Shown here piece after piece: positions 4,474 through 63,920 of a DNA stretch of 64,000 nucleotides; position 1 is the first letter of the stretch; each line of letters opens with the position of its first letter. The translations under genes were made by a program, and so were the position numbers. Source of the DNA: Entomortierella parvispora E1425 (lineage: Eukaryota; Fungi; Mortierellomycota); assembly GCA_020891255.1 (NCBI GenBank), contig BQFW01000006.1:1984001-2048000 (forward strand), written 5' to 3'. The notes beneath the pieces were generated by a model. The model saw nothing but the letters and a program-made list of their open reading frames with translations, was not told the origin of the DNA and did no database searches.

Positions 4474-6225
4474 ATGGAAGACGCAGCTCTACATTCAGGA
4501 GACGCATCAGGATCAGCATCCTCCACTACAGGACCCCAGAGGGAGGAGGCATCTTCGGCAGCCCTCGTTCTGTTCTCTAGCGCCGCACCAGGTCCCCCAC
4601 GTCTTTCCGCAGTTCTACGGGGATATGAAGACCCATCACCGCTCAATATCCCAGAGCTCCTGGCACGAATTGGACGATTCATGGACCTGCCCACCCTCCT
4701 GACCTCTCAGCTTGTGTGCAGGGAGTGGCACAAGGTACTTGACTGCTTGCGTTGGACAGAATTAAAGCTCGTTCAAATGGGTCGGCACTTCAAACAACCC
4801 ATGCCAGAAGACTTTATCCGCCGGCATGCGCCTCTGGTCCAGCGACTCTCGATTTGGGTCAACCGTCACCACTACCGACGAGTCGACGGAAACCTGCACA
4901 AAGAACTTTGTCTCCGGACCCTTGACTTTCCGAAGCTTATATCTCTCGAGATTTGCATTCGAAACGGTCCGTACTCTCGTGGTGACGAAATAAGGGACAT
5001 TCAGTTTCTGACCTCAGAATTGTTTAGGTTAATGTGGACGAGAAGTTCGACACTCGACTCAGGATACGGGTTTCCTATGCTTCAAGAGTTGAAGATTACT
5101 GATTTTCAATTCAAGTTTTTACCTCGAGACTGGATGGTCCTTTGGGAGAGGCTTTGGTCCCGCCTCCAGGTTCTTTCACTGACCGGCCCTTGGTGGGAAA
5201 ACCGCCAAGTCTTTCCAGAAGAGGACGGTACCAATGTTGTCAGCCAGGAGAGTCAAGGAAAAAGGTATGAAAAGATGTGTGACCCTGCCGAAATGGAAAA
5301 TCTTGCCAAACGACTGGGACCTTCCTCAACGATGCGGGATTTGACAATGGTTCAACACAGTGAGCCCGAGAACTCTGGCCTGTATCGGATGCAACAGTGG
5401 ATAGTGAGCCAATGCCCCAATATCGTCCGATTGAAATGGCGCATCGGCGGGACAGCGGTTCAGCATGGGAGGCCCACGCTAATGATTCGGGACCTCATCG
5501 TGAGGGGGAGTCGACTGAACCCCCCACAATTTCAGAACTTGGAAACCCTGGCTCTCCCCTTCGACATTGACCAAACCGAGTTTTTGGCCCTAGCCACTCT
5601 CATGCGGAGCTGGACGGAACTCAACATAAAAGGATCGCAGTTCTTTGATTGGTACACATGGTATTTGCTCAAGACAACCCTGCGGCATTTGAATACGCTC
5701 CGGGTCGTCAATGTTGCGTTCTGTTGTTTGAATGGAACGGATATTATCGATATGCTTTGCTCTCTGCCAAAGTTGGAAGTTTTCCGAGGAACTTTTATTA
5801 CGGATAAGGACCTGCTGGAGGACCCTAGGCCATGGGCTTGCAAGGAAACGCTGAAGCGCCTTTGCTTGCATCTCAACATGCCCCAGAGGCAACCCCGCTC
5901 CCAAAGTGTGATCATTGGTCGATTGGCCGAATTGGAACAACTCGAGTATTTGATCGTCCCCGATTGTTGTTTGATTTTGGATTTGTCCAAGCCAAACGGA
6001 GTGCTGGAGGGCTTGAAGACACTCAGGAACTTGAGGATACTCTCCTTGCAGATGCGACTCGAGAGCTACAGGTGCGACTGGGGCCTGGCGGAGATCGCGT
6101 GGGTCCGAGAGAATTGGCCAAATCTAAAGTATGCGGATTCTGTTCAATACAAAGTCGAAGTAGGGGAAGGGGACCGATTCCTTCGCAGCTATTATCGTGG
6201 ATTCAGTTCGGTGACCATTTCGTAA
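4474..6225 (+). CDS. F-box/LRR protein, array copy 2, 583 aa
   Basis: Collinear paralogue of copy 1 (PLNIPELLARIGRFMD...VCREWH; PWACKETLKRLCL; CDWGLAEIAWVRENWP). Confidence 0.9.
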   Translation: MEDAALHSGDASGSASSTTGPQREEASSAALVLFSSAAPGPPRLSAVLRGYEDPSPLNIPELLARIGRFMDLPTLLTSQLVCREWHKVLDCLRWTELKLVQMGRHFKQPMPEDFIRRHAPLVQRLSIWVNRHHYRRVDGNLHKELCLRTLDFPKLISLEICIRNGPYSRGDEIRDIQFLTSELFRLMWTRSSTLDSGYGFPMLQELKITDFQFKFLPRDWMVLWERLWSRLQVLSLTGPWWENRQVFPEEDGTNVVSQESQGKRYEKMCDPAEMENLAKRLGPSSTMRDLTMVQHSEPENSGLYRMQQWIVSQCPNIVRLKWRIGGTAVQHGRPTLMIRDLIVRGSRLNPPQFQNLETLALPFDIDQTEFLALATLMRSWTELNIKGSQFFDWYTWYLLKTTLRHLNTLRVVNVAFCCLNGTDIIDMLCSLPKLEVFRGTFITDKDLLEDPRPWACKETLKRLCLHLNMPQRQPRSQSVIIGRLAELEQLEYLIVPDCCLILDLSKPNGVLEGLKTLRNLRILSLQMRLESYRCDWGLAEIAWVRENWPNLKYADSVQYKVEVGEGDRFLRSYYRGFSSVTIS

Positions 6226-6395
6226 AGGGGTATCTGTCCTTCCCCGATGGGCATCATCAAAGTGTCGCAAAAATGTAGTGAAGGGGGTAATTGGAGCGGA
6301 AAATCTCGTCCAAATCGAGCAGGGAAATAAAGAAAAAAAAAAAAAATCAAGCACATGTGTCTTTCATCACATCTTCCATTGAACGCATCGAAATC

Positions 6396-8102
6396 ATGGA
6401 AGGCTCAGATCAGCATCCTGGAGAACCATCAGCATCTAAAAGAAGACTCCGGAGTCTTCGTTTTAGAAACGTACCAGGTCCCCCGCGCTCCACTCTAGGA
6501 GCTCCAGGGTACGAAGAATCCTCTCCGCTGAAGATCCCAGAGGTCCTGGTCCAGATTGGCGAGTACATGGATCAGGCCACCCTTTTGGCCTGTCAGCTTG
6601 TTTGTAAGGAATGGCACAGGACACTCAACCTCTTGCTTTGGAGAGACCTGAAGCTTGTTCAATTTGGCAACCAGTTCAAGTATCCCATGTCGGACGTCTG
6701 TATCGGCCTTCACGCACCCCTGGTCCAGAAACTCTCTCTACGGTTCGACACTCAACATTACCAACAAGTCAATGGAAATCTGAGCGACAATGTCTGTCTC
6801 CGGACGATTGACTTTCCAAAGCTCACTTCGCTAGAGATTGGTGTAAAGCGGTGCTGGTCCAGTACGGATACCCTGAAAGACGGCATGGAGTATCTGACCT
6901 CAGAATTGTTCAGGTTGATGTTGGAGAGCAGCTCTGCACTTAACAGCGGAGGGCAAGGACTCCGTATGCTCCAGGAGTTGAAGATCACCAATTTTCAATT
7001 CAGGTTCTTGCCTTCGGATTGGATCACCCTTTGGGAAACACTTTGGTCCCGACTTCAAGTTCTTTCATTAATCGGTCCTTGGTGGGATGTGTATCAGGTA
7101 TTTCCTGAAGAGGATGGCATTGACGTTTTCAGCGATGAGAGCAGGAGGAGAGCATTTGATCGGCACGCAGATCTTTTTAATTGGGAGGCGATGGATGAGT
7201 TGGCCGAGTGGCTTGAACCGTCCTCGACGATGCGGGATTTAACTATGGTTAACTACAACACAACGGAGAATGAAGGGTTGTATAGGCTTCAGAGGTGGAT
7301 GTTGAGGCAATCTCCCAATCTAGTCCGCTTGGATTGGCGTCTTGGCTGGAAACTTGATCCGATCGAAAGGCCAATGGAATTGCTGTGGGAGATCATCAGG
7401 AATGGGAGGCGCGAAACCCCCCCACGGTTTCAGGACCTGGAGACCATATCTCTCTCGCCAATGCTTGAAGAGGATGAGTTTGTGGATCTGATCAATGCCA
7501 TGCCGCGCTTAACGGAGATGAATATGGATTGCCTGAGAGACTTTGGGGACAGCGCATGGGGTTTGCTCAAGGCCGTGACACCACGCCATTTGGCGACGAT
7601 CCGGATCATGAAGGTTGATGCAACTGGCCTAAGTGCGGGCGCGTTGATCGATATATTGTGCTCTCTGCCAAACTTGGAAGTTTTCCGAGGAGATTATATT
7701 ACGGATCAGGACCTGCGAAAAGATCCTCGACCATGGGCCTGCCGGAGAACGCTCAAGAGCCTGGAACTGAATTTTGAGGTCACGTCCCGAAAACAAGTCC
7801 TTGCCCAGAAGCTGATTGTCAAGCGTTTGGCAGAATTGGAGCAGCTCGAGGAGTTGGACGTGAGCGATTCATATTTGCAGCTGGATCTATCGAAACCCAA
7901 AGGGCTATTGACGTCCTTGAGAACCCTCAAACACCTCAAGACATTCTCGATGGTGTCTCAGCTTGAGGATTTCAATTGCGATTGGGGGCTGGCCGAGATC
8001 GCGTGGGTCCGAGAGCACTTGCCAAAGTTGAAATACGTGGATTGGATCGAGTACAAAGATGAGGTGAGGGAGGAAGACAAATATCCTCCCATTCCTCGTT
8101 AG
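6396..8102 (+). CDS. F-box/LRR protein, array copy 3, 568 aa
   Basis: Collinear paralogue; ATG at 6396 follows the shared ...catcATGGA leader. Confidence 0.9.
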   Translation: MEGSDQHPGEPSASKRRLRSLRFRNVPGPPRSTLGAPGYEESSPLKIPEVLVQIGEYMDQATLLACQLVCKEWHRTLNLLLWRDLKLVQFGNQFKYPMSDVCIGLHAPLVQKLSLRFDTQHYQQVNGNLSDNVCLRTIDFPKLTSLEIGVKRCWSSTDTLKDGMEYLTSELFRLMLESSSALNSGGQGLRMLQELKITNFQFRFLPSDWITLWETLWSRLQVLSLIGPWWDVYQVFPEEDGIDVFSDESRRRAFDRHADLFNWEAMDELAEWLEPSSTMRDLTMVNYNTTENEGLYRLQRWMLRQSPNLVRLDWRLGWKLDPIERPMELLWEIIRNGRRETPPRFQDLETISLSPMLEEDEFVDLINAMPRLTEMNMDCLRDFGDSAWGLLKAVTPRHLATIRIMKVDATGLSAGALIDILCSLPNLEVFRGDYITDQDLRKDPRPWACRRTLKSLELNFEVTSRKQVLAQKLIVKRLAELEQLEELDVSDSYLQLDLSKPKGLLTSLRTLKHLKTFSMVSQLEDFNCDWGLAEIAWVREHLPKLKYVDWIEYKDEVREEDKYPPIPR

Positions 8103-8354
8103 AGCGCGACTAGACAGTGAACTTTCATTTCATAGAGAGTCATCCCATCCTCCTTCCCTGGGGATCTTCATAGTCTTTTTCAATGACAGGAGATGTGGCA
8201 GTGACAGACTGGAGGAAGAATAGTGGGGTTGCTCACTTCTGAGCACCCGTTGGTCTCAGACCCAGCATGGAAAATCAAAACAAAAGAAAAAAAAATCAGG
8301 CACATGTTTTGTTTGCATCTTTCATTCGTAACGTTCATTCGCCCCATCAGCATC

Positions 8355-10082
8355 ATGAAAGAACCAGCTCAGCTTTCAGGAAAGGCATCAAAGCTATCAA
8401 ACTCGACTACAGGACCCCAGCGGCAGGAGGCTCCCTTGCTATCGCCTGCCCGGTCCTCTAAAAACGCACCAGGTCCACCTGCTCTTACCACAGGGCTCAA
8501 GGGGTATGCGAGTCCCTCACCATTCGAGATCCCAGAGCTCCTGGTCCGCATTGGGGGATTCATGGATCAGTGTACCCTCCTGGTTTGTCGGCTAGTGTGC
8601 AAGGAATGGCTTAGGACGCTCGACTTCTTACTTTGGGAAGAACTACAACTCGTTCAACTTGTCAATCGATTCCAAGCACCTATGACGGACGATTTTGTTT
8701 GCCAGCATGCACCTTTCGTCCAGCGACTTTCGATCCACATCAAAGCAAACAAGAAAAGCGGAAGAAATATGAATGATCATCTCTGTCTCCGGACCATTGA
8801 CTTTCCAAAGCTCGCATCACTCGAGATCGGTATTCAAAGGGGCCAGCCTTATGTCGACTGGGCTTTGCACCTGGAGGATCTGTCCTCAGAGTTATTCAGG
8901 CTGATGTTGGAAAGCAGCTCAATGTTCAACAACGGAGGACACGGGCTTCCAGTGCTCCAAGTGCTGAAGATTACCGAATTCGGATTCAAGTTCTTGCCTC
9001 GGGACTGGATGACCCTTTGGGAGACGCTTTGGTCCCGGCTTCAGGTTCTTTCACTGATCGGTCCTTGGTGGGGGAAAGACGCCGTTTTCCCGGAAGAGGC
9101 AGACAAGGTGTTTTTCAGGGATGAGAGTGTGGATAGGCAATTGGACCGGCACGAGGAGCTGTGCAACAGGGATGAGATGCGAATGCTGGCCAGGCGACAT
9201 GGACCGTCTTGGACGATGCGGGATTTGACCATGATCTGTCACAATTCAGATAACGAGAGTGTTTACATGATTCAGGAATGGATGGTGGAACAGTGCCCCA
9301 ATTTAGTTCGGCTTGAATGGGATATGGGCTCTGGAGCCGATCAGATGGAAACGATACGGAACCTCATTTTAAAAGGGAGTCGGCTGGACCCCCCTCAGTT
9401 TCAGAACCTGGAGGCCCTGGCTGCCATGCCAGTTCATGCAGAGTTCGAGTTCATGGACATGATCCAGGCTATGCCGCGTTTGACAGAACTGGACCTGAAA
9501 TATATGCACGACTTTAAGGACAGCACATGGGATTTGCTGAAGGCTGAGACGCCGCGCCATTTGGCAACGATACGGATCCTGGATGTGACAAACTCGAGGT
9601 TTAGCTCGCCCACGTTGATCGATATGCTCTGCTCTCTACCAAACTTGGAGGTTTTCAGGGCACACTATATTACGGACGAGGACCTGTTGGATGACCCTCG
9701 ACCATGGGCCTGCCGCAAAACACTCAAGAATCTGTATCTGGATTTTGAGGTCTCTTCCGAAAGCCTAGTCGACGCCCGGAGTCTGGTTGTCAGTCGATTG
9801 GCGGAATTGGAGCAGCTGGAGGAGTTGCACGTGTGCAATTCATATTCGCTGTTGGATCTGTCCCTGCCCGAAGGACTCTTGACGGCTTTGAAACCCTCCA
9901 GGAACCTAAAGAAACTCACGCTGGAGTTTAGTCCAGAGTCCTCTTGCCCTTGGGGTCTGGCCGAGATCGCGTGGGTCAGAAAGAACTTTCCAAAACTGAA
10001 AAACGTTGGTGGTGTGAGTTACAAAGACGAAGTGAGAAGGGAGGATCAATTTGCTCCCATCCGTAGGCCGTGGTTCGCCTAG
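8355..10082 (+). CDS. F-box/LRR protein, array copy 4, 575 aa
   Basis: Collinear paralogue; ATG at 8355 after catcagcatc. Confidence 0.9.
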   Translation: MKEPAQLSGKASKLSNSTTGPQRQEAPLLSPARSSKNAPGPPALTTGLKGYASPSPFEIPELLVRIGGFMDQCTLLVCRLVCKEWLRTLDFLLWEELQLVQLVNRFQAPMTDDFVCQHAPFVQRLSIHIKANKKSGRNMNDHLCLRTIDFPKLASLEIGIQRGQPYVDWALHLEDLSSELFRLMLESSSMFNNGGHGLPVLQVLKITEFGFKFLPRDWMTLWETLWSRLQVLSLIGPWWGKDAVFPEEADKVFFRDESVDRQLDRHEELCNRDEMRMLARRHGPSWTMRDLTMICHNSDNESVYMIQEWMVEQCPNLVRLEWDMGSGADQMETIRNLILKGSRLDPPQFQNLEALAAMPVHAEFEFMDMIQAMPRLTELDLKYMHDFKDSTWDLLKAETPRHLATIRILDVTNSRFSSPTLIDMLCSLPNLEVFRAHYITDEDLLDDPRPWACRKTLKNLYLDFEVSSESLVDARSLVVSRLAELEQLEELHVCNSYSLLDLSLPEGLLTALKPSRNLKKLTLEFSPESSCPWGLAEIAWVRKNFPKLKNVGGVSYKDEVRREDQFAPIRRPWFA

Positions 10083-10263
10083 AAAAGGTGGTGAGCATCT
10101 CATAAAGAATATATTCTCTTCTTCGCCTCAGCATCTTCATGTTGTTGTTTGTAACAGGATAATTTCGTGCCTGTTCGAGCACGCGTTGGTCCCAGCAGCA
10201 CGAAAAATCAAAAAAATGTTTGTCATCTTTCGATTCATGACGTTCATTCATCACATCAGCATC

Positions 10264-10496
10264 ATGGAAGACCGAGTTCTAAATTCAGGAGAGGCATCAG
10301 AATCAACGACCTCTGCTACAGGATTCCTTGGACAGGGGGCTCACTCTGCATCTTTAACTCTGCCTTCTAGAACCGCACCAGGTCCACCTGCCGTTACTAC
10401 AGGGCCCCAGGGGTGTGAAGACCCATCACCACTCAAGATCCCAGAGGTCCTGGTCCGCACTGGGAGGGGGATCAGTACCTTCCCATTCCTTGTTAA
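10264..10496 (+). pseudogene. F-box/LRR array copy 5, internally deleted: N-terminal leader fused out of frame to the last ~10 codons
   Basis: MEDRVLNSGEAS...PSPLKIPEVLVRTG is directly followed by gag ggg gat cag tac ctt ccc att cct tgt taa (EGDQYLPIPC*), which matches the family C-terminus (copy 3 EEDKYPPIPR*, copy 6 EEDQFPPIPFD*). Confidence 0.85.
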
Positions 10497-53285: not shown

Positions 53286-56055
53286 TCAATTGATCTTGAG
53301 GCTGGATCGAATCGCCTGGATACCGATATCGCTCTCCAATGGAGTAGCGTCCTGAAGACCTCCCGCTGGATCCTCAAGCGATCGAGACTGCAATCCGTTC
53401 ACGCCCACAGAGAACGAGGTGGCGCCAATGGCATCACTCAAACGCGACAACCAGCTGCTCTTGACACCAAACTCTTTTTTGCGCACCTTCAGCTCTGCAT
53501 CTGTGGGGATGCTATTCAACAACAAACCCACGGTCGATCGCAGACCCAGATAGACATGCTCAGAGACCAAGATCCACAACAGGAGCATGGCCAGACCCAG
53601 GCGAGGGCCATGGGCCTCGGAGGTATCAAGGGTGCCATGGAAGAGATAAATAATCGAAGCATTGGTGATGGACGAGAACCAGGTAATGGTCTGGAGGTTG
53701 TCGATCCAGGGTCCAATGGTGTCGGTTCTGGAAGGGATGGGTCGGCGGGCATTGTAGCTGATCTTGGCGGCATCCGATCGAAGTTCAACCCAGTTGTTGA
53801 CAAACGCACAAAGTCCAGTCAAGGGCCAGATCACACTAAAGAGAGATACGTAACCGAACTAAAACAAGAAAGACCAGGATTAATATTGACAGTCTTGTAG
53901 GGTTGGAGACAAGACCAAACCACCAGCTTGCATTGCCTTATCCATGATTTACCTGAAGAACCATCTCGGCATAGTCCTCATTGACATCGTACTCGGGGAG
54001 CTCGGCCTGCTTCCTGACACGGTTCAAAAACTGTTTGGTATCCTCGGAATCCTCACCAAACGAAGGAATGGCGGGGCCCTGCCCATTGGTCTCGTGATGC
54101 AACTTTTCCGAAACCTCATTTTTGATTTTGACGGCTCCAACCATGGCACGACGCGTCAACCAGGGGACAATAGTCTCGGTTGCAAAACTGACGGCCTGTG
54201 TGGTGATCATAAAGGCCTTGAGGCGGTTCTGAAGCATGTGCGAGTCGATCGTCGCACTGGCAAAAGGCAAGCCGTAGCTCTGGAAGGTCGAGATCACTTG
54301 AGGTCCAAAGGGGATGTAGATGTAGGCGGTCAACAAGATCGACATGTAACTGGTCAGGGCATTGAAGATGAACACCTTTTGCATCAAATGGTATTCGTGT
54401 GATCCACGCGTCTCGTAGTTCTCATAATCAGTGAGCTTCAATGAGACTGATTTGCAAATAGCGGCGACATTGGGGATCGCAAGCGAATACAGAACCATGG
54501 GGAGATAGATCTATATCCAAAGATAGAGAGAGAAAAAAGTTCAATGAGAAAAATGAATGACAGCACAATCTCCGACGTCATCTTCTTCTCTTGGAACATT
54601 GTTGCTCATGTCAGCTTTCTTACCAGGATTTCCTTCATGTATCCGTCGTAATAGACGGTCAAAAAGACTTCAATTCCAAAAACGCAGGTGATAACTGCCG
54701 CCAGGGTCAATGCGCCTCCGACCACTACGGGGATGCCAGCAATCCTGCGCGTCCATCGCTTCCATGGAGAGAAATATGGCTCCATTTCTCCAGTGACGGG
54801 GTCCAGCATCATGGTGTCGCCCTTGAACGTTGGGCGTCTCATCTCGGTCTTTGACACATGGCGGACACCCCACCAAAGAGCAAGCTCCTTCTCCCGACGC
54901 TTCCAGCATTCCGTAAATACGACTGACCAGAGGATCACAAAGACTCCATAAGAGATGGAAAAGGGCGATCCAAAAAAGTGGATGAGAACGCCCAAAGCTG
55001 TGGGTGCGGCCAGCCACTGGAAGTAGAACTGCAGGAACTCGAAATAGTAGGCAACCTTTTCACCAAAGTGATCGCGAACCTGCGACAAGTCGTTTTGATC
55101 CACAATCCACTTTGTTGACCAAGACTTGAGCCACGACTGTTCGGGAGGGAAAAAAAAAAAAAGAGTTCGTGAAAGTGAAGAAGATCAAGTTGTTTTAGTA
55201 CCCATTGCTTTTTCTTTGCCTCTGTTGCTTCGTCGAGAACATGATCTGACAAAGACACTAATCCAGTCCATCCATACATACCATGTTGAAGGCCTTATCG
55301 TGCAATGGCAAGATACTCTTAACATACTCATCCTCGCCAGCATAGATTCCTGCACCTCCTTCACTGGGAATTCCCCGAATCAGCTCTGCAATGATGCGGA
55401 GTCGGTCCGATTCTGTAACATCGTCCAAAGATTCATCGCGACCCTTGGCAGGCTGGAGCAATTGCTCCGTCTCGGCCGTATCTGCCACCCTGACTCCTGC
55501 CAACCAGTCGTGAATGCTATGATGAGATACGAATGCAATTGAGTTAGTGACGAAAGGAGCATGAAAAAAATATGCTGCACGGATCACAGTTTCTCCATCC
55601 AAAGAGGAAAAAAAAAAAAGAAGCGGAAGGGGGATGATCTCCCATTACCTGTTCTTGGTGATCTCACGCTTCAACACTGCCCAAGGGCAGAGAACAAAGA
55701 TAAAAAGCATGTCGGGTCCGTTGGGACGCGTCTCGTGCTGGAGTCCAACTCGCGTCAGCTTTTCAATCACGTCCTGGTAGGCCTGGAGAGTTTTCTGTTC
55801 ATACTCGGGTCGAGCGACGGCGCCCTTGACGGGTTGTTTGTACTTGAAGACGAGGACGAGGTCGGCATAGTACTCGAGACTCTGGGTTTTGCCTGCCCTA
55901 TAGAGGGTCTGGGTGTGGATGGTGGCAGTGCCTTCTTTGTTGGATGTTTCTGCATTCTGGGAATGTTGCTTGACAATGGACGAGTAAATGTCGTAAAAGC
56001 GGAGGCTGGAGCCAGACTTGGCCGAGGCATTTGCCGCGCTGGAGGATGGTTCCAT
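53286..56055 (-). CDS. IST2: Anoctamin/TMEM16 family scramblase/channel (Ist2-like), multi-exon
   Basis: VRDHFGEKVAYYFEFL, EDYAEMVLQ, NNWVELRSDA and RRPIPSRTDTIGPW, with multiple transmembrane segments. Confidence 0.92.
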
Positions 56056-56456
56056 TGAGAGTCGGCAGCAGCAAATGGGCTGTGTGAGTGGAGAGTAATG
56101 AATGAATGAAGAAAGAAAAGGAAATGTAAAGAGTGAATGGAAAAGAAAGAAGAGAGAAAAAAGAAAAGAAAAAGACGGGAGCAGAGAGAAAGAGAGAGAG
56201 TGCAGCCCAGACCATGGGACCGTGAGACATATCCAACTTGCTCTCGTTTGGACCATTAGTTCATATCCGTCCTATCCCTAGCTTGCAAATCTTGACTGTC
56301 ATCACCATGCCGTAAGCCATCGTTCCTTGGACTTGTTTGTTGCCCTCACTCCAGGAAACTCTGTCCTACTCAACTTGGACCCAGCATGAAGGATGTGAAA
56401 TATGTGCAATCGTTTTATTGCATACAAAAGACCCTTGAATATTCTCTTCCAATTAT

Positions 56457-59400
56457 TTACATTGCCCTTCCAGACTCACGGCGCTCCTGTTGCTGGCGAT
56501 TCTGCTCAGTCCTGAACCAAAAGTCTGCATCCGACTCTGTGGCATTGCGGTCCATCTCTTGCAATCGGTCGCCAGCCTTGTTCAAGCCAGATCGGACCCC
56601 CTTCTCGAGATGGCCCATTTTGCTCTCGGCCTCTCGAGTGCGGGCACTCCACCAGCCCTTGCTGTCGTCCATAACCCTGTCGACCTCAGTCTTGGCCTTG
56701 GACAAGTCCCGGTCAACCTGATCGGTCTTGTTGTTCCACCAGCGCTTGGTCTCCTCCTTGGCCTGGGAAGCACCACGCTGGGCGGACTGCTCAGCACCAA
56801 AGAGGTCATCACGCGTCTGACGCAAGTCATCGCGGATATGGTCTACCAAAGTGTGTCCATCGTGGCTGCCAAGGCTGTGACTCTGTCCCTGGTCAGATTT
56901 GGATGAAGTGGAAGAGGAAGACGATGATCCCTTCCACCAGATGCGGCTCTCGGGGACTGTTGTCTCTCTCAAGACCTCCTCTTTGGTCTTCTGGGCAGCG
57001 GCGCCAGCAGCGCCAGCAGTGCTAGAGGCAGCGGCCGATGCAGACTGGGCACTGCCGAGAACAGAGTCCTTCAAGTGTCCAAGACCACCCTGGATATCCA
57101 TCTTGGTCTGCTTAATGTCCTCGACAATGTGCTCCAAGAGCTCTCCAGTGCTGTCGAATCCATCGTGGCTGTGGGTGTGCTTGGTTGAAGTACGCTCGGT
57201 CAAGACCTCCTCAGACTTGGAAGTGGATGAAGACCAAGGCCATAACCATCCTCTTCTAAAGGAAGACGAAGTAGTTGCCTCTCGCAACTCCTCGTTCAAG
57301 GCACGCTCGGTGGAACGCGTCTTCTCCAACAAGAGGGCCTCAGCACGGCGTTTAGCCTCCAAAACCTCAGCCTGAGCACGCTCGAAAGCGAGCTTGTCGG
57401 CTTGCTCCTCGGCAACGCGCTCAGCAGCACGCTTCTTCTCTGCAGCAGCAGCCTCACGCTCGCGAACAACGCGGAGCTCAAGATCACGAGCAGCCTTCTC
57501 AGCAGCCTGGCGCTTCTGATCCAACATGTCCTGAGCTGCCTGTTCGGCCTTGATGCGCTCCTCATAGGCGAGGGCCGCCTCAGCCTTGGCACGGATCTCG
57601 GCATTGTACTGCTCGTCCTTGAGTCTCTCAAGGTAAATCCTCTCTTCGAGCTCGCGGGCTGTGCGCTCGACCTTGACCTTTTCCTCACGGACCTTGGCCT
57701 CCAAGGCTGCCTTAACTTCCAAAGCTGCCTTCTCTGCTGCGGCAGTCTCGCGAAGGACGCGGTCTCGGATATCTTTGGCAGCCAGATCGGCCTTTTCTTT
57801 TTGCTCACGAGCCCAGGCATCAGCCCTGGCCTTGAGTTGGAGAGCAGCCTCCTCAGCGGCAGCCTTCTCTTGTAAGACGCGGTCCTGGACCTCCATGGCG
57901 GCAAGATCAGCCAAGCGGCGCTGCTCCAATTCCCAGGCTTGGGCCTTGGCCTTCGCACCAGCGGCGACGCGATCAGCAGCCTCCTTCTCGGCAGCGAGAC
58001 GAAGCTCCATTTCCTTAGAGGAGCGCTCAATGGCGGCCTGGCGTTCACGGATCAGGGCTTCCGACTGGGCCCTGGCCTGACGGGCAGCATCCTCAGCACG
58101 AGCACGGGCCTCAGCAGCCGATCTTTCGAGGATAGCCTGTTCCTCTGCCAACTTGTTGGCAAGATCCAAAGCGGCCTGTTCAGCGGCCTGCTTGGTCTCC
58201 CAGACCAAAGACTCGGCCTTGTCCTTCAAGTTGGACAAATTGCCCTCGTAATCCATAGATCGCTGGCGGCTCCACCAAGAGGTGCGACCGAGAGAACTGC
58301 CAGAGAAGCTGCCGGGATAGTTGTAGTAGTTGGCATCACGGACACTGGCGCTGGACATTTCCTCGCCGTTGGACCAGTGCTCGGGCTCCTTGTTGGGGCG
58401 GAGAGCATAGGCGCGCTCGGCCCAGTAGTCGCGGTTACCAGAGTAGAGGTGCTCTCCAGAGTACCGGGACTCATCCACGCGAGCAGTGCCAATCTCTTCT
58501 CCGTTGGAGGACCAGCGGTCGACGTCCTTATTGTCCAAGATTCCATAGGAGTAGCTGTCGCTGGCAATATAAGATGAGCCGGGGGCGCTGTGGGGGTGAT
58601 CTCTTCCAAACTTCTTGCGTAACGAGTCAAGACGTGCAGAAGCAGCACGGCGTGCCGATGCAGAAACTGCCTCAGCATCATCAATATCCTTGTCATCCAA
58701 GATTCCATCCGCGAATGTTTCACTGGCAATATATGATGAGCCGAGGGGATGGTGAAGGTATTCTTCTTTTCCAAGCTCCCTGCGTAACGAGTCTAGACGT
58801 GCAGAAGCAGCGCGGCGTGCCGATGCAGAGCTAGAAGCGTCCTCAGCATCGTCAATATCCTTGTCATCCAAGATTCCCTCCGCGAAGGTTTCGCTGGCAA
58901 TATAAGCCGAGCCGGGGGGATGGTGGAGGTATTCTTCTTTTCCAAGCTCCCTGCGTAACGAATCAAGGCGTGCAGAAGCAACGCGGCCTGTCGATGCAGA
59001 GCGGCCTGTCGATGCAGAGCCAGAAACGGTCGATGCAGAGCCAGAAACTGCCTCAGCATCATCAATATCCTTGTCATCCAAGATTCCCTCCGCGAAGGTC
59101 TCACTGGCAATATAAGATGAGCCGAGGGGATGGTGAAGATATTCTTCTTTTCCAAGCTCCCTGCGTAACGCGTCAAGACGTGCAGAAGCAACGCGGCCTG
59201 TCGATGCAGAAACTGCCTCAGCGTCATCAATGTCCTTGTCATCCAAGATACCCTCTGCGAAGGTTTCACTGGCAATATAAGATGAGCCGAGGGGATGGTG
59301 AAGGTACTCTTCTTTTCCAAGCTCCCTGCGTAATGAATCAAGACGTGCAGAAGCAGGGCGGCCTGTCGATGCAGAAACTGCCTCAGCATCATCGATATCT

Positions 59401-61579
59401 TTGTCATCCAAGATTCCCTCCGCGAAGGTTTCGCTGGCAATATAAGATGAGCCGAGGGGATGGTGAAGATATTCTTCTTTTCCAAGCTCCCTGCGTAACG
59501 CGTCAAGACGTGCAGAAGCAACGCGGCCTGTCGATGCAGAAACTGCCTCAGCATCATCAATATCCTTATCATCCAAGATACCCTCCGCGAAGGTTTCGCT
59601 GGCAATATAAGATGAGCCGAGGGGATGGTGAAGGTACTCTTCTTTTCCAAGCTCCCTGCGTAATGAATCAAGACGTGCAGAAGCAGGGCGGCCTGTCGAT
59701 GCAGAAACTGCCTCAGCGTCATCAATGTCCTTGTCATCCAAGATACCTTCCGCGAAGGTTTCACTGGCAATATAAGATGAGCCGGGGGGATGGTGAAGGT
59801 ATTCTTCTTTTCCAAGCTCCCTGCGTAATGAGTCAAGACGTCTAGAACCAGCGCGGCCTGCCGATGCAGAGCCAGAAGCGGCTTCAGCGGCATCATCAAG
59901 ATCCCTGTCATCCAAGATACCCTCCATGTAGCTGTCGCTGGTAATATAAGTCGCGGCAATGGTGTGATGAGGGTGGCCATTCAAAGATCCGGGTCCGGCC
60001 GCGCCGGCGCCACGCGACTTGAGACCGAACCAACGACTGTCATGGCGATGGAAGGGGTTGTGGTCATGGATCTCGGGGGCTGAATTGGAGGTGTTGATCG
60101 TTGCATCGGAACTTTGGCGATGGAACCAAGACTTCTCGGCAGTCTTGGCCAGGTGCTCTGCATCTCTCTTAGCCTCATACTGGGCACGCTGGGCCCACCA
60201 GGCATCATCGGCCTTGATCCTGTCTTCAATCTTCTTGTCAACGACCGCACTGGTGTCTTCGACCCAGTCCTCGACCTTCTTGGTTGCGTCATCCACCTTC
60301 TTGGTCACTTCTTCAGCCTGAACGCGAGCCATGTGGGAAGCACCCTCCAATGTCTTTTCAGCCTTACGGGCCTTCTCTGTGATCCAAGACTGGACACCCT
60401 TGGCCTGGTCCTTGGCCTGGTCCTTGACCTTCTCGGCAGAATCCTCCACCTTGGACGAAGTCTTGTTCCACCAGTGCTTGGCTTCTTTGGCCTTTCCTTC
60501 AATGTCATGCCGGAGATGACGGGCGCCATCGCGCGCGTCCTCATAGGCATCCTCGGCCTTGTTGGAGGAGCGGTTCCGCCAGTACTGGGCACGGTGCTGG
60601 ACATCATCCTTGAGGTCGTCCGCACGCGACTCGGCATGGCGCCAGGCGTCTCTAGCACGGGAGCTCAATTCGCTGGTCGAGCCAGATTCGTAACCCTGGC
60701 CTTGACTGTAACCTCCTTGGTGAAGGCTCTGGCGGTGGCCTTCGCCATCGAAGTCACTGCTGTGTTCGGGGCACTTGGGAATACGAGGCCCATCGATCGC
60801 CTCAAAGATCGAGTGCGTCGCGTGGGGCAAGAAGTAGGCTCCAGCAGCGGTGGCAAATGCCACAGGTGAAAACAAACGGATCAGAATATTTCCTATCGAA
60901 TCGATCGAAATAGAGTGAGTGACAACAGGGTCAGCAGGAAAAAAAAAAAAAAAAAAAAAAAAAAAATTAAAGCTGCATTAATGTCTTACTCTGGCGGGCC
61001 ACCAAGGAACCAGTGAGACCGGCCAATGCAACATAGAGCAATCCAGGCAAAAGTTCTTCTTCCTGCGAGATGAGGGAGCGATGGTGAGAAAGACCGTGTT
61101 GCTGTTGTTGTCCTTGACGGCGAATGCTCAAGGGATCTTGATCGTGCTCGTGGAAGGCGTAGCGGAGATGGCCGCTTCCACGGTTGTCCTCAGGGTCTTC
61201 GTCGTCGTCGTAAGAAGAGGAGCGACCACGTCCATGGCGCTCACGATCATCGTAACGCTGACAATGGGAAGGGTCGCAAATATCGTCAGAACCAGCGAGT
61301 TTTTGTTATAAAGAGCTGAGGAAAGAGAGAAAAAAAGACTAGGAGATAAATAACAAAAAGACACTTACGTTGTACTCATCAGCGTACACTGTCGTGTACG
61401 AGGTGAAAGCTCCACCGGCAACAAGGCCAGCAGCAGCGGCAAGGGTCATTGGCTGTAAAAAAAAAAAAGCACAAGCCGATCCATATCCAAGTTAGCGGTC
61501 AAGAAATAGCATTCAACTCTATCCTCTCGAGCCATTCCATCTTTGTTTTATCATTTACTCGAAAGACGGGAAGGACCAT
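56457..61579 (-). CDS. Giant Mic26/Mic27 (ApoO)-like protein with LEA-like helices, 55-aa repeats and coiled coil; join(61579-61559, 61452-61369, 61257-60990, 60892-56457), ~1,602 aa
   Basis: Four GT-AG exons splice in frame. The exon 3/4 junction gives EEELLPGLLYVALAGLTGSLVARQRNILIRLFSPVAFATAAGAYFLPHAT, which I recognise as the Mic26/27 two-transmembrane signature. Confidence 0.8.
58521..59948 (-). repeat. Coding tandem repeat, ~165-bp (55-aa) unit, 8 full units plus 1 partial
   Basis: Unit YIASETFAEGILDDKDIDDAEAVSASTGRxASARLDxLRRELGKEEYLHHPLGSS, read directly from the ORF. Confidence 0.95.
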
Positions 61580-63920
61580 GTTGGAAGGATGAATTAAATA
61601 CTACGAGTGGGGAAGGGTGAAGGGGTCAGAGATTTCGTGCGCGCGCCAAGAATGGCGGGTGTGGTGTGTGTGTGTGTCTGTGTCTGTGTGTGGTGTGATG
61701 CACAGTTGGCGTGGAGCGGGTTGGACGGAGTAGAGGGTAGGGGGTGGGAAGGGGATGGCGGTGAAGAACAAAGAAGACGAGGTAGAAAGGTCTGGCCTCG
61801 ATAGATTGGCAGGGTGTTGCAGACAAGACCGGGATGGATTTGAACATGTGGTGTTTGAGACGCGACGAAACATTTTTTTCTTTTACGACATCGCGTCTCG
61901 GACGTAGAGGCGACGCGCTCTTTACACATATTCAGCCACGATGGTGTTGTGGATCGTCCCCTCTTCCATTCAAAAGTCTGAATGGATGGATGGTGGATGA
62001 ATAGACGACAAACAAGCTAGAGATTAAAAAGTTCTCCCTTCTTGTAGCTCAAGTCACTGGCAATAGCCCGTCACCATTTTTGTCCTGTTTTTCTACGAAA
62101 TTCTGTTCCAGGCCGGGATGGTGACAAAAGTCCTTGAATCCATGCGGCCCGACGTTTGTTCTGTTTGTTCGGCATGCATGGACCAAAGAGCAGAAAGTTT
62201 CCAAAGTGGCGAGAGGAGTGTGGGAAACTTTTTTCTTTATCACATCAGAGCCCAGATCCCTCTATTAAAGAAATCAAGGATCGGCATGGTGTAGCAAGCA
62301 AGCTGCAGAGTTTTGAGGCATCCAATTCGGCGCAAAGAAAGAAGAGAAAACTCAATTGCTTGACACGCACGGTCCCAGTGAAAGGGATGAGACTGGTCCA
62401 AAGGGCGACGGACGTGGGGACGGGGAAAAAAAAATGTCCCAATCCCTAGAATCGGGTCTGTGCTTCCAAAATGCACAAAAGACGCGTCGAAACAGGAGAG
62501 CCCCGTCCTTCTCTCGACGACGATAATCTCAATCAGAATCCCAGAAGGACCCTTTTCCTTGCATGCACGACCTTGTGGTTAGTGGTGTTGAGCGGGGCAA
62601 GGGGGGTTGGGGTCCCAAGGCAGGGTGAAGAATGAAGCGCGTATCCCCTTCCATTGCGGGTTAGCCCTGCCGGCACCCTTGATCGCAAGATGTAGGCTGA
62701 ACAGTAGTGTATCTTCTCTCACGCTCTGTCTCTCGCTCGTCCCGCAATCCTCTCCCCCTTCCTCTTTCCCGTCTCCCTCCCTCTTGCTCTCTCTGTCTCT
62801 CTCCCCTGCGAGATACTTGCCTCTTTTTTCTTGCTCGCCAACCCTTGCGGACTCTCCTTTTGATGCAGGTCAATCATCTTTCTCTCCGACCCTCTGTGCG
62901 TTATATGCAAATCCAACGACCGAAACAAAGGTGCGAGTTGAAAAGAGACACGGAAAAAAAGGAGAGCCACCCCAAGAAGGACGCGACATGTACAACCGAA
63001 TCTTGCAGGAGGAAGAAGGGGAGTAGGGACACAGCAGGGCATTAAACTGGTATGGAACAAGAACAAAGACGAATGGATCCATGGTGCAACTGCATGGAGC
63101 CTCCATGGGGGTTTTGGATCCAAGTATGGACTTTTTTTTTTGTTTGTTTCTTTCCACCAATGGTTTGTTGATTTGAACTAATAGCAACTCCCTCGGTTGT
63201 CATGATCCTCAAACATTGAACATCATCCTCTTACTCTCATTCCTGCACCACCAAAAATGAACGACCTGGGACCAACGGAGTATATCGGTGAGGCAGGTAC
63301 CAAGAAGAGAAAGAAGAAACAATTATACAAAAGGGCATCATAGGAAAATTAGGGCAAACATGACAACATAAAACAACGATACATATAGACCCCCCTTTCC
63401 CAACTGTGGTCAGCAGTATAATTTTCATCATCTCTTCTGTATCAACAGCACTTTGCGCTCGGCAAAAGAACCGTCTTTTCGACTTCAAGGTCATATTTTG
63501 TGTGTGTCTATAAGGTTGTCTGGTGGTTCATTGGTAGCGTGGTAGGGTCGATGCACTGCCTCCAGTTGCCGATTGCCATTGTCGATCCTCACAACAAAGA
63601 TGCACAAACTGTCTCCTCTGCAAGTTCATCACTACTCTCTGCTTGGCTTGGATATCTGATGTACGCGACCTTTTTCAATGGTCCCCCACACAGACACCTA
63701 CGCAGCTACGAGGGAGACACCCCCTTTCAAGTTCCACCAAGCGGCTGCAGGCGCCCTCAACTTTCTTCTTCTTCTTGGAAACAGGAGGCCTAGATCGGAG
63801 GTGACATCTTTCGTTTCGTGACACAGAAGACTTTTTCAGTCCTCTGTCTTTCTCTCTTTCCATCTCTCTCTCTCTATGTCTCTATCTCTCTTTTCTCTAA
63901 CATTCCTTCTCTTCTGTTTC

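Follow-up and report, generated by a model that had tools for sequence, protein, structure and literature searches.

Mammalian MIC26 (APOO) and MIC27 (APOOL) and yeast Mic26 and Mic27 form the ApoO family of accessory MICOS proteins, described in reviews as small, opisthokont-specific paralogs (PMC10243636; PMC4802753). In the family layout, a positively charged stretch links two hydrophobic helices, large parts of the protein are exposed to the intermembrane space (IMS), and cardiolipin is bound; both ends of APOOL point toward the IMS (PMC3660581). Where they have been tested, family members are mitochondrial (PMC3660581; PMC10243636). Here we analyze a gene of the fungus Entomortierella parvispora E1425 that joins an ApoO-type hairpin to a tail of ~1,450 amino acids (aa). 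It lies on the minus strand of a 64,000-nucleotide stretch (assembly GCA_020891255.1, contig BQFW01000006.1, positions 1,984,001 to 2,048,000), referred to below as the window, and all coordinates are those of the window. We have high confidence that the gene is real and that its product is a giant paralog within the ApoO family. On balance, we favor the view that this giant, which belongs to the Mortierellaceae, acts as an accessory scaffold or stabilizer of the crista or boundary membrane beside canonical MICOS.

Like the yeast and mammalian proteins, the giant has two hydrophobic helices with a basic loop between them and an N-terminal hydrophobic sorting segment (PMC3660581). It also shares the amphipathic stretch past the hairpin, and its match to the ApoO profile (PF09769) is above threshold. 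In contrast, Mic26 and Mic27 have about 200-340 aa, a size range that the 1,602-aa giant far exceeds; the N-terminal half of the profile is missing from it, ~1,450 aa of helices and repeats are added, and a canonical short paralog exists beside it. A second point of comparison is Mic60/mitofilin, in which an inner-membrane anchor leads into a long helical part that faces the IMS (PMC8301002), a likeness that would hold only if the giant is placed as we propose. Unlike Mic60, the giant has no mitofilin domain and no sequence relation to it, uses a hairpin instead of a single helix as its anchor, and has helices that are not built on heptads.

The tail has its own set of analogs. Group-3 late embryogenesis abundant (LEA) proteins and the bacterial YtxH and ElaB/DUF883 proteins have K/E/D/A-rich amphipathic helices based on 11 residues beside disordered stretches, as does the giant, but the giant has no LEA family match, scores 14.8 bits against 37.5 for YtxH, and has tail parts that are strongly conserved in sequence. 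One group-3 LEA protein, LEAM, is a mitochondrial protein of plants. The exchangeable apolipoproteins (A1/A4/E) and perilipin-4 share repeated amphipathic helices, 11/22-mer logic, and class-A charges with the giant. The profile matches are weak, however, with scores far below the gathering value of 90, and the giant differs from both in its 40-aa repeat unit and its hairpin membrane anchor. Domain II of TolA, which spans the bacterial envelope, likewise combines a membrane anchor with a very long A/E/K-rich single helix. It is the nearest ESM Atlas neighbor (0.61), but this score lies within chance, and we draw a functional analogy and claim no homology.

Literature searches on MICOS, Mic27, or ApoO with Mortierella or Mortierellomycota returned nothing on these giant proteins. 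An initial annotation, made from the DNA alone, had stated that there was no described equivalent. This holds for the literature searched, but orthologs are present in databases as hypothetical proteins or under the automatic name "MICOS complex subunit."

Gene structure and the ApoO hairpin

The gene runs from 61579 to 56457, the first letter of its start codon and the last of its stop codon, as in the initial annotation. It has four exons and is intact: joining 61579-61559, 61452-61369, 61257-60990, and 60892-56457 gives an open coding sequence of 4,809 nt, which encodes 1,602 aa. The three introns (106, 111, and 97 nt) are all GT..AG. The longest piece had already been visible as a minus-strand open reading frame of 1,472 codons (56457..60875), to which the initial annotation proposed adding three small upstream exons. 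Splicing indeed yields the proposed N-terminus, MVLPVFRPMTLAAAAGLVAGGAFTSYTTVYADE, and completes the hairpin motif LLPGLLYVALAGLTGSLVARQRNILIRLFSPVAFATAAGAYFLP, which spans intron 3. The exons and the hairpin are as follows.

61559..61579, minus strand: exon 1 (MVLPVFR), with the start codon at 61579-61577; Mortierella polycephala has the same seven-codon exon and GTAAATG donor.
61369..61452, minus strand: exon 2, N-terminal hydrophobic sorting-type segment to VYADE (aa 8-35), from splicing and the M. polycephala alignment.
60990..61257, minus strand: exon 3, disordered R/D/S/H/Q-rich linker and first hairpin helix (aa 36-124), from the ApoO match (28.4 bits) and composition.
56457..60892, minus strand: exon 4, second hairpin helix and the entire ~1,450-aa tail, with the stop codon at 56459-56457 and ApoO profile positions 88-114 on its first 27 residues.
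60816..61062, minus strand: ApoO hairpin (aa 101-150), two hydrophobic helices and the basic loop RQRNILIR; the span includes intron 3 (60893-60989).

Three DNA runs and no RNA run were listed for this DNA or its sample. Support for the splicing is comparative, drawn from the M. polycephala locus and from protein fragments of other species. The M. polycephala ortholog (P0003, 1,333 aa) is encoded by a 4,310-nt gene in four protein-mapped blocks, with three intron positions identical to those of the window gene. When the two DNAs are aligned, exon 1 shows few differences, mostly at third codon positions, and the donor after it, GTAAATG, is identical. The remaining donors and acceptors are near-identical and the exons carry codon-like substitutions, whereas the introns have diverged and are unalignable. 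In other species, intron 3 falls at the same codon, as seen in two database fragments (P0007, ending "..ARQSKTK," and P0008) that read through it. A single exon encodes both the second hairpin helix and the whole tail, so anchor and tail are not separate genes, and the proposed fusion of an anchor to a long tail stands.

Membership in the ApoO family was judged by the gathering score of PF09769, 31.4 bits, with the window protein scored exon by exon. The Pfam scan matches the profile on both sides of intron 3, which bears out the suggested family assignment: exon 3 matches positions 48-86 at 28.4 bits, and the first 27 residues of exon 4 match positions 88-114. The first 313 aa of exon 4 reach 33.3 bits by themselves, above the gathering score. 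Orthologs in which the hairpin is unsplit (1,062-1,333 aa) score 55-68 bits. Hydropathy is maximal at aa 103-105 and 127-128, with the basic loop RQRNILIR between the two maxima, the two-helix layout of the family. The hairpin is 71-78% identical across orthologs, and in the hairpin alignment the loop R-x-R-N-I-L-I-R is common to the giant and to short ApoO proteins of related fungi.

The N-terminus also resembles that of the short proteins. Residues 1-35 form a hydrophobic segment that ends in VYADE, with the hydropathy peak at aa 1-11; short ApoO proteins from related fungi likewise have a hydrophobic stretch that leads into [VI][YF]A[DE]E. Between this segment and the hairpin, the poorly conserved R/D/S/H/Q-rich linker at aa 36-100 intervenes; in the giants, such a low-complexity linker replaces the N-terminal half of the ApoO profile. 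The short paralog P0028 keeps this half, covering profile positions 10-116 at 82 bits.

Two simple repeats were noted around the gene. A (GT)n microsatellite of ~20 units lies at 61659-61697, ~80 nt upstream of the start codon, and intron 3 contains a 28-nt homopolymer (T on the coding strand, 60939-60966); M. polycephala intron 3 also has a long homopolymer. The next gene downstream, also on the minus strand, is of the anoctamin/TMEM16 type (54606-56256; Pfam Anoctamin 149.9 bits and Anoctamin_N 34.6 bits, scored in pieces). At the M. polycephala locus (L001, ortholog at 6001-10310), the neighbors are Bestrophin_2, PC4, Sec66, a methyltransferase, and TM7S3_TM198. Local synteny may not be kept, since no anoctamin gene adjoins the ortholog there.

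Anatomy of the tail

AlphaFold2 places long helices in several parts of the tail, in agreement with the K/E/D/A-rich and A/E/R/K-rich helical segments of the initial annotation. From the N-terminal to the C-terminal end, the tail features are as follows.

60081..60665, minus strand: amphipathic helical region 1 (aa 201-395), W-containing and K/D/E/A-rich, from periodicity 3.65, AlphaFold2, and sub-threshold Apolipoprotein and YtxH matches.
58534..59950, minus strand: tandem array of 55-aa acidic repeats (aa ~441-905), from Tandem Repeats Finder (165 nt x 8.2 copies) and the motif SSYIASETFAEGILDDKDIDD, present nine times.
58263..58388, minus strand: W/Y-rich conserved motif (aa ~960-1001: HWSNGEE..VRDA.YYNYPGSF..SWWSR), from the ortholog alignment.
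57570..58229, minus strand: single 220-residue helix (aa 1013-1232), A/E/R/K-rich with a 40-aa repeat, from AlphaFold2, autocorrelation, and periodicity.
56478..57509, minus strand: three further helices (aa 1253-1328, 1375-1433, and 1473-1596) with S/T-rich disordered linkers between them, from AlphaFold2.
56460..56540, minus strand: conserved C-terminus (aa 1576-1602: DADFWFRTEQ..RRESGRAM), at least 70% identical across orthologs.

In the first helical region, AlphaFold2 models two helices, aa 197-277 and 281-392, with a predicted local distance difference test (pLDDT) score of 70-91. Hydrophobic periodicity over aa 201-395 is 3.65, with a power of 177 against a shuffled maximum of 40+/-10, and the same period recurs at aa 1480-1600 (97 against 35+/-9). 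On a helical wheel of aa 197-392, the apolar face consists of A/V/W/T, with K/R on its flanks and D/E on the opposite side.

The 220-residue helix is modeled at a pLDDT of 85-92 and is about 55-75% identical across genera. Its autocorrelation peaks at lags of 40, 80, and 120, with side peaks at +/-11, which reveals a 40-aa repeat. This segment had been annotated as a coiled coil; the helix is there, but the heptad signal is not. Power at a period of 3.5 is only 0.1-0.5, with the peak at 3.65, and the hydrophobic moment is 0.05 at 3.5 against 0.59 at 40/11. Because 40/11 = 3.64 belongs to a helix that is not supercoiled, the period fits a helix on a lipid surface, as in apolipoproteins, group-3 LEA proteins, or perilipin, or else a straight bundle.

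Between these two helical regions lies the repeat block, whose 55-aa unit was correctly recognized by the initial annotation. It contains a 330-nt higher-order unit at 92% and has a net charge of -43. The strict motif G[IL]LD[DN][KR]D occurs nine times in the window protein; five other proteins of the same clade (clade A, below) have 5, 4, 3, 2, and 1 copies, and the two Linnemannia proteins of that clade have none. Since the last copy runs into a conserved "..DRWSSNGEE.GTA.." element, the array appears to have grown by internal duplication of an ancestral single motif. The W/Y motif that follows is the best-conserved block of the tail (81% identity, columns nearly invariant) and is modeled as unstructured, at low pLDDT.

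No globular domain is predicted, as the predicted template modeling (pTM) score is 0.24-0.28 in both AlphaFold2 models, and the entire 1,602-aa protein has one cysteine. In a BLAST comparison, aa 11-291 of the giant align with the entire short paralog, including its ~110-aa K/E/T/A-rich tail. As the alignment takes in this tail, the giant's tail may elaborate an older, short amphipathic tail of the family.

The tail had also been called LEA-like. The composition and the 11-residue-based amphipathic (11/3) periodicity of LEA proteins are present, with the peak at 3.65, but no LEA Pfam family (e.g., LEA_4, PF02987) was matched at E<=1 in any scanned piece. The Pfam signals that did appear are below threshold: Apolipoprotein A1/A4/E (PF01442) at 22-24 bits against a gathering score of 90, YtxH at 14.8 against 37.5 bits, and ApoLp-III. 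Pfam matches of the long exon to WbqC (34.5 bits, with zero stretches passing alone) and GP120 were rejected; they sit in the tandem repeats with no single stretch passing, so we take them as repeat-inflated summed scores. A PDB sequence search with aa 956-1602 gave no match. In the ESM Atlas, the feature neighbors retrieved with the C-terminal 307 aa and with the long helix (LEA_4, at 0.72, perilipin-4, YtxH, DUF883, and TolA) have scores of 0.55-0.72, in the chance range, and serve as analogies only.

Paralog groups in the Mortierellaceae

We searched a HMMER profile of the hairpin against 1.84 billion representative sequences and obtained 320 matches; our statements on long forms cover the best 150 of these. 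An earlier word-based search with the hairpin piece had recovered fragments only. Among these 150, all matches longer than 590 aa are from Mortierellaceae, in the genera Podila, Mortierella, Linnemannia, Entomortierella, Gamsiella, Dissophora, Haplosporangium, and Actinomortierella. Every long ApoO match that carries a name thus belongs to this family, as expected from the lineage-specific origin that had been suggested. One further match, P0098 (478 aa, seven stretches in the profile search), was set aside as low-complexity and not ApoO. Separately, a metagenomic protein of 381 aa (P0029) has an ApoO-type hairpin followed by a helical tail named ElaB/YqjD/DUF883 by its source, so the hairpin can carry a modest LEA-like extension in proteins other than the giants.

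Within the Mortierellaceae, the ApoO proteins fall into four groups: short proteins, mid-length proteins of 690-770 aa, and two clades of giants. A tree of 17 giants (901 columns) separates clade A (support of 96 in the Shimodaira-Hasegawa-like approximate likelihood ratio test, SH-aLRT) from clade B (99). Clade A contains the window protein and those of Podila verticillata, P. minutissima, M. polycephala, and Linnemannia, and clade B contains those of Podila horticola, M. alpina, Entomortierella, Gamsiella, and Dissophora. Podila and Mortierella are represented in both, and partial clade A proteins exist for P. horticola and M. alpina; for these reasons, the two clades are probably paralogs. 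The clade B proteins (P0014-P0022, P0155, and P0156) have about 760-1,275 aa and the same architecture as clade A; they have no G[IL]LDxxD tandem array and contain two to three copies of the WSNGEE.GTA element. The 1,550-aa protein of Actinomortierella ambigua (P0014) branches outside both clades.

The mid-length proteins (P0026, P0041, P0079, P0088, and P0105) have a basic, presequence-like N-terminus, the hairpin, and a tail rich in K/D/E/R, where a YtxH-like match reaches threshold (39.9 against 37.5 bits). They end in ..GRGRERGM (GRGRERGM/GRGERGL), which is related to the ..RRESGRAM of the giants.

When the 278-aa P0028 was used as the query, canonical short ApoO proteins (245-341 aa) turned up throughout the family, including in assemblies that also contain long forms. 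M. polycephala has a short (BG011_003137), a giant (BG011_004123), and a mid-length protein (BG011_005596), as does Mortierella sp. NVP85 (BGX34_010775, BGX34_011385, and BGX34_008556, respectively). Short and long forms also occur together in P. minutissima, L. zychae, M. alpina, and E. parvispora, where the short one is named MIC26. The separate short MIC26/27 paralog for which the initial annotation had advised looking is therefore found in assemblies with giants. A tree of the hairpin separates short (95), mid-length (98), and giant (87) proteins, with much shorter branches among the short ones; built on 90 columns, it gives no branching order for the three groups. Because canonical short ApoO proteins occur in the same assemblies as giants, we regard the window gene as an added, faster-evolving paralog and not as the lineage's Mic26/27. 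Of the identity first proposed, a Mic26/27-like protein of the crista junction, the ApoO hairpin is retained, but the protein is an extra paralog beside the canonical short form.

Location and role

The giant is well supported as an object, and its role is what we infer from the features above. A location in the mitochondrial inner membrane and IMS is moderately probable. In this model, the family-typical N-terminal hydrophobic segment would sort the giant to the inner membrane like other ApoO proteins. Since this segment and the loop are shared, the sorting route and membrane environment may be the same as those of the short, presumably MICOS-resident proteins. The hairpin would insert with its basic loop RQRNILIR facing the matrix, leaving both ends, including the ~1,450-aa tail, in the IMS or crista lumen. 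There, ~670 helical residues with a class-A pattern (A/V/L face, K/R flanks, and D/E opposite) could lie on, coat, or bridge cardiolipin-rich surfaces. Such a membrane-coating or scaffolding role is a tentative part of the proposal. The acidic motif array (nine copies here, and 1 to 9 depending on the species) may act, together with the conserved W/Y motif, as a set of multivalent binding sites. Specific partners are indicated because the W/Y motif, the long helix, and the C-terminus are all conserved. The giant would act beside canonical MICOS and not as its Mic26/27 subunit.

Several points weigh against this proposal. Location, MICOS association, and function are all inferred, and the gene model comes from comparison. 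The only pointer to membrane binding by the helices is their periodicity, and in the 220-residue helix, A and L are abundant on the opposite face too, which would also fit helix-helix bundling. The giants do not match the full-length ApoO domain; they start at profile positions 42-63 and cover only ~42-118. Importing 1,450 residues into the IMS would be unusual. Finally, one basic residue precedes the N-terminal hydrophobic stretch in the giant, compared with 2-5 in short family members, and because of this single residue, the window N-terminus resembles a signal peptide as much as a presequence.

In the main rival explanation, the protein is not mitochondrial and the ApoO-type hairpin has been reused as a monotopic or hairpin anchor in the endoplasmic reticulum (ER) or on lipid droplets, with an 11-mer-periodic tail that works on a lipid surface like perilipin-4 or an exchangeable apolipoprotein. 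An N-terminus with one basic residue, a hydrophobic stretch, and V-Y-A|D-E is signal-peptide-like; the MICOS role is already covered by the canonical short paralog; and the host fungi are oleaginous. The sub-threshold Apolipoprotein A1/A4/E matches point the same way, and the Atlas neighbors include clusters of perilipin-4-like and LEA_4 proteins, though at 0.55-0.72 these are in the chance range and a lead only. However, the N-terminal segment and the basic loop are also present in short ApoO proteins, whose family is mitochondrial where tested (PMC3660581; PMC10243636). In addition, the paper on the M. alpina lipid droplet proteome and its supplement name no ApoO, MICOS, or LEA protein, which is weak evidence against a droplet location. 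We consider this explanation unlikely.

Less likely still is that the giant is mitochondrial but mainly a stress or dormancy protectant, a membrane-anchored, LEA-type shield induced by drying, freezing, or spore formation and not a constitutive scaffold. The 11/3 amphipathic periodicity with its A/V/T-type apolar face would suit such a shield, as would the disordered linkers and lack of a globular fold (pTM 0.24-0.28), and in the mid-length paralog the YtxH-like match reaches threshold. Yet no LEA Pfam family is matched, and the 220-residue helix and W/Y motif are about 55-81% identical across genera, which is above expectation for a purely physicochemical shield.

The giant might also be regarded as the lineage's own Mic26/27 ortholog, grown by a tail and replacing the short subunit, given its ApoO hairpin and the automatic UniRef name "MICOS complex subunit" of its orthologs. 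This is highly improbable, being contradicted in relatives: short ApoO proteins with a full-length profile match (82 bits over positions 10-116 for P0028) stand beside giants (e.g., BG011_003137 beside BG011_004123) and form their own slowly evolving group. That the gene model itself is an artefact, with anchor exons and long open reading frame from separate transcripts, is scarcely credible even though the splicing rests on comparison, as tail and second hairpin helix occupy one exon, the profile match leaves exon 3 at position 86 and resumes in exon 4 at the adjacent position 88, other species keep the splice sites and intron positions with codon-like substitutions, and the architecture is kept in more than 16 orthologs.

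The reading that we favor, an accessory scaffold or stabilizer beside canonical MICOS, can be extended to the family as a whole. With their giants and mid-length paralogs, the Mortierellaceae may have derived from the ApoO hairpin a second layer of crista architecture that is specific to the lineage, a speculative idea that is more doubtful than the scaffolding role of the giant itself. Straight amphipathic helices, including a single helix of up to 33 nm, would line or bridge inner-membrane surfaces in the crista lumen, and the acidic motif, variable in copy number, would recruit partners multivalently. If true, the mitochondria of these fungi would contain a protein coat resembling apolipoproteins, for which yeast and animals have no counterpart.

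In all, within a single fungal family the ApoO hairpin has given rise to four paralog groups and been lengthened as much as seven-fold by amphipathic helices of the membrane type. The giants are thus a natural experiment on what the hairpin anchors and what a tail that faces the IMS is able to do. Whether they are mitochondrial or not can be put to the test, as several species of Mortierellaceae grow in culture. If the giants are not mitochondrial, they would be the first ApoO-family proteins reused elsewhere. If they are mitochondrial, they would be among the largest IMS-exposed proteins known and would offer a handle on how cristae are stabilized in cold- and drought-tolerant, oleaginous soil fungi.

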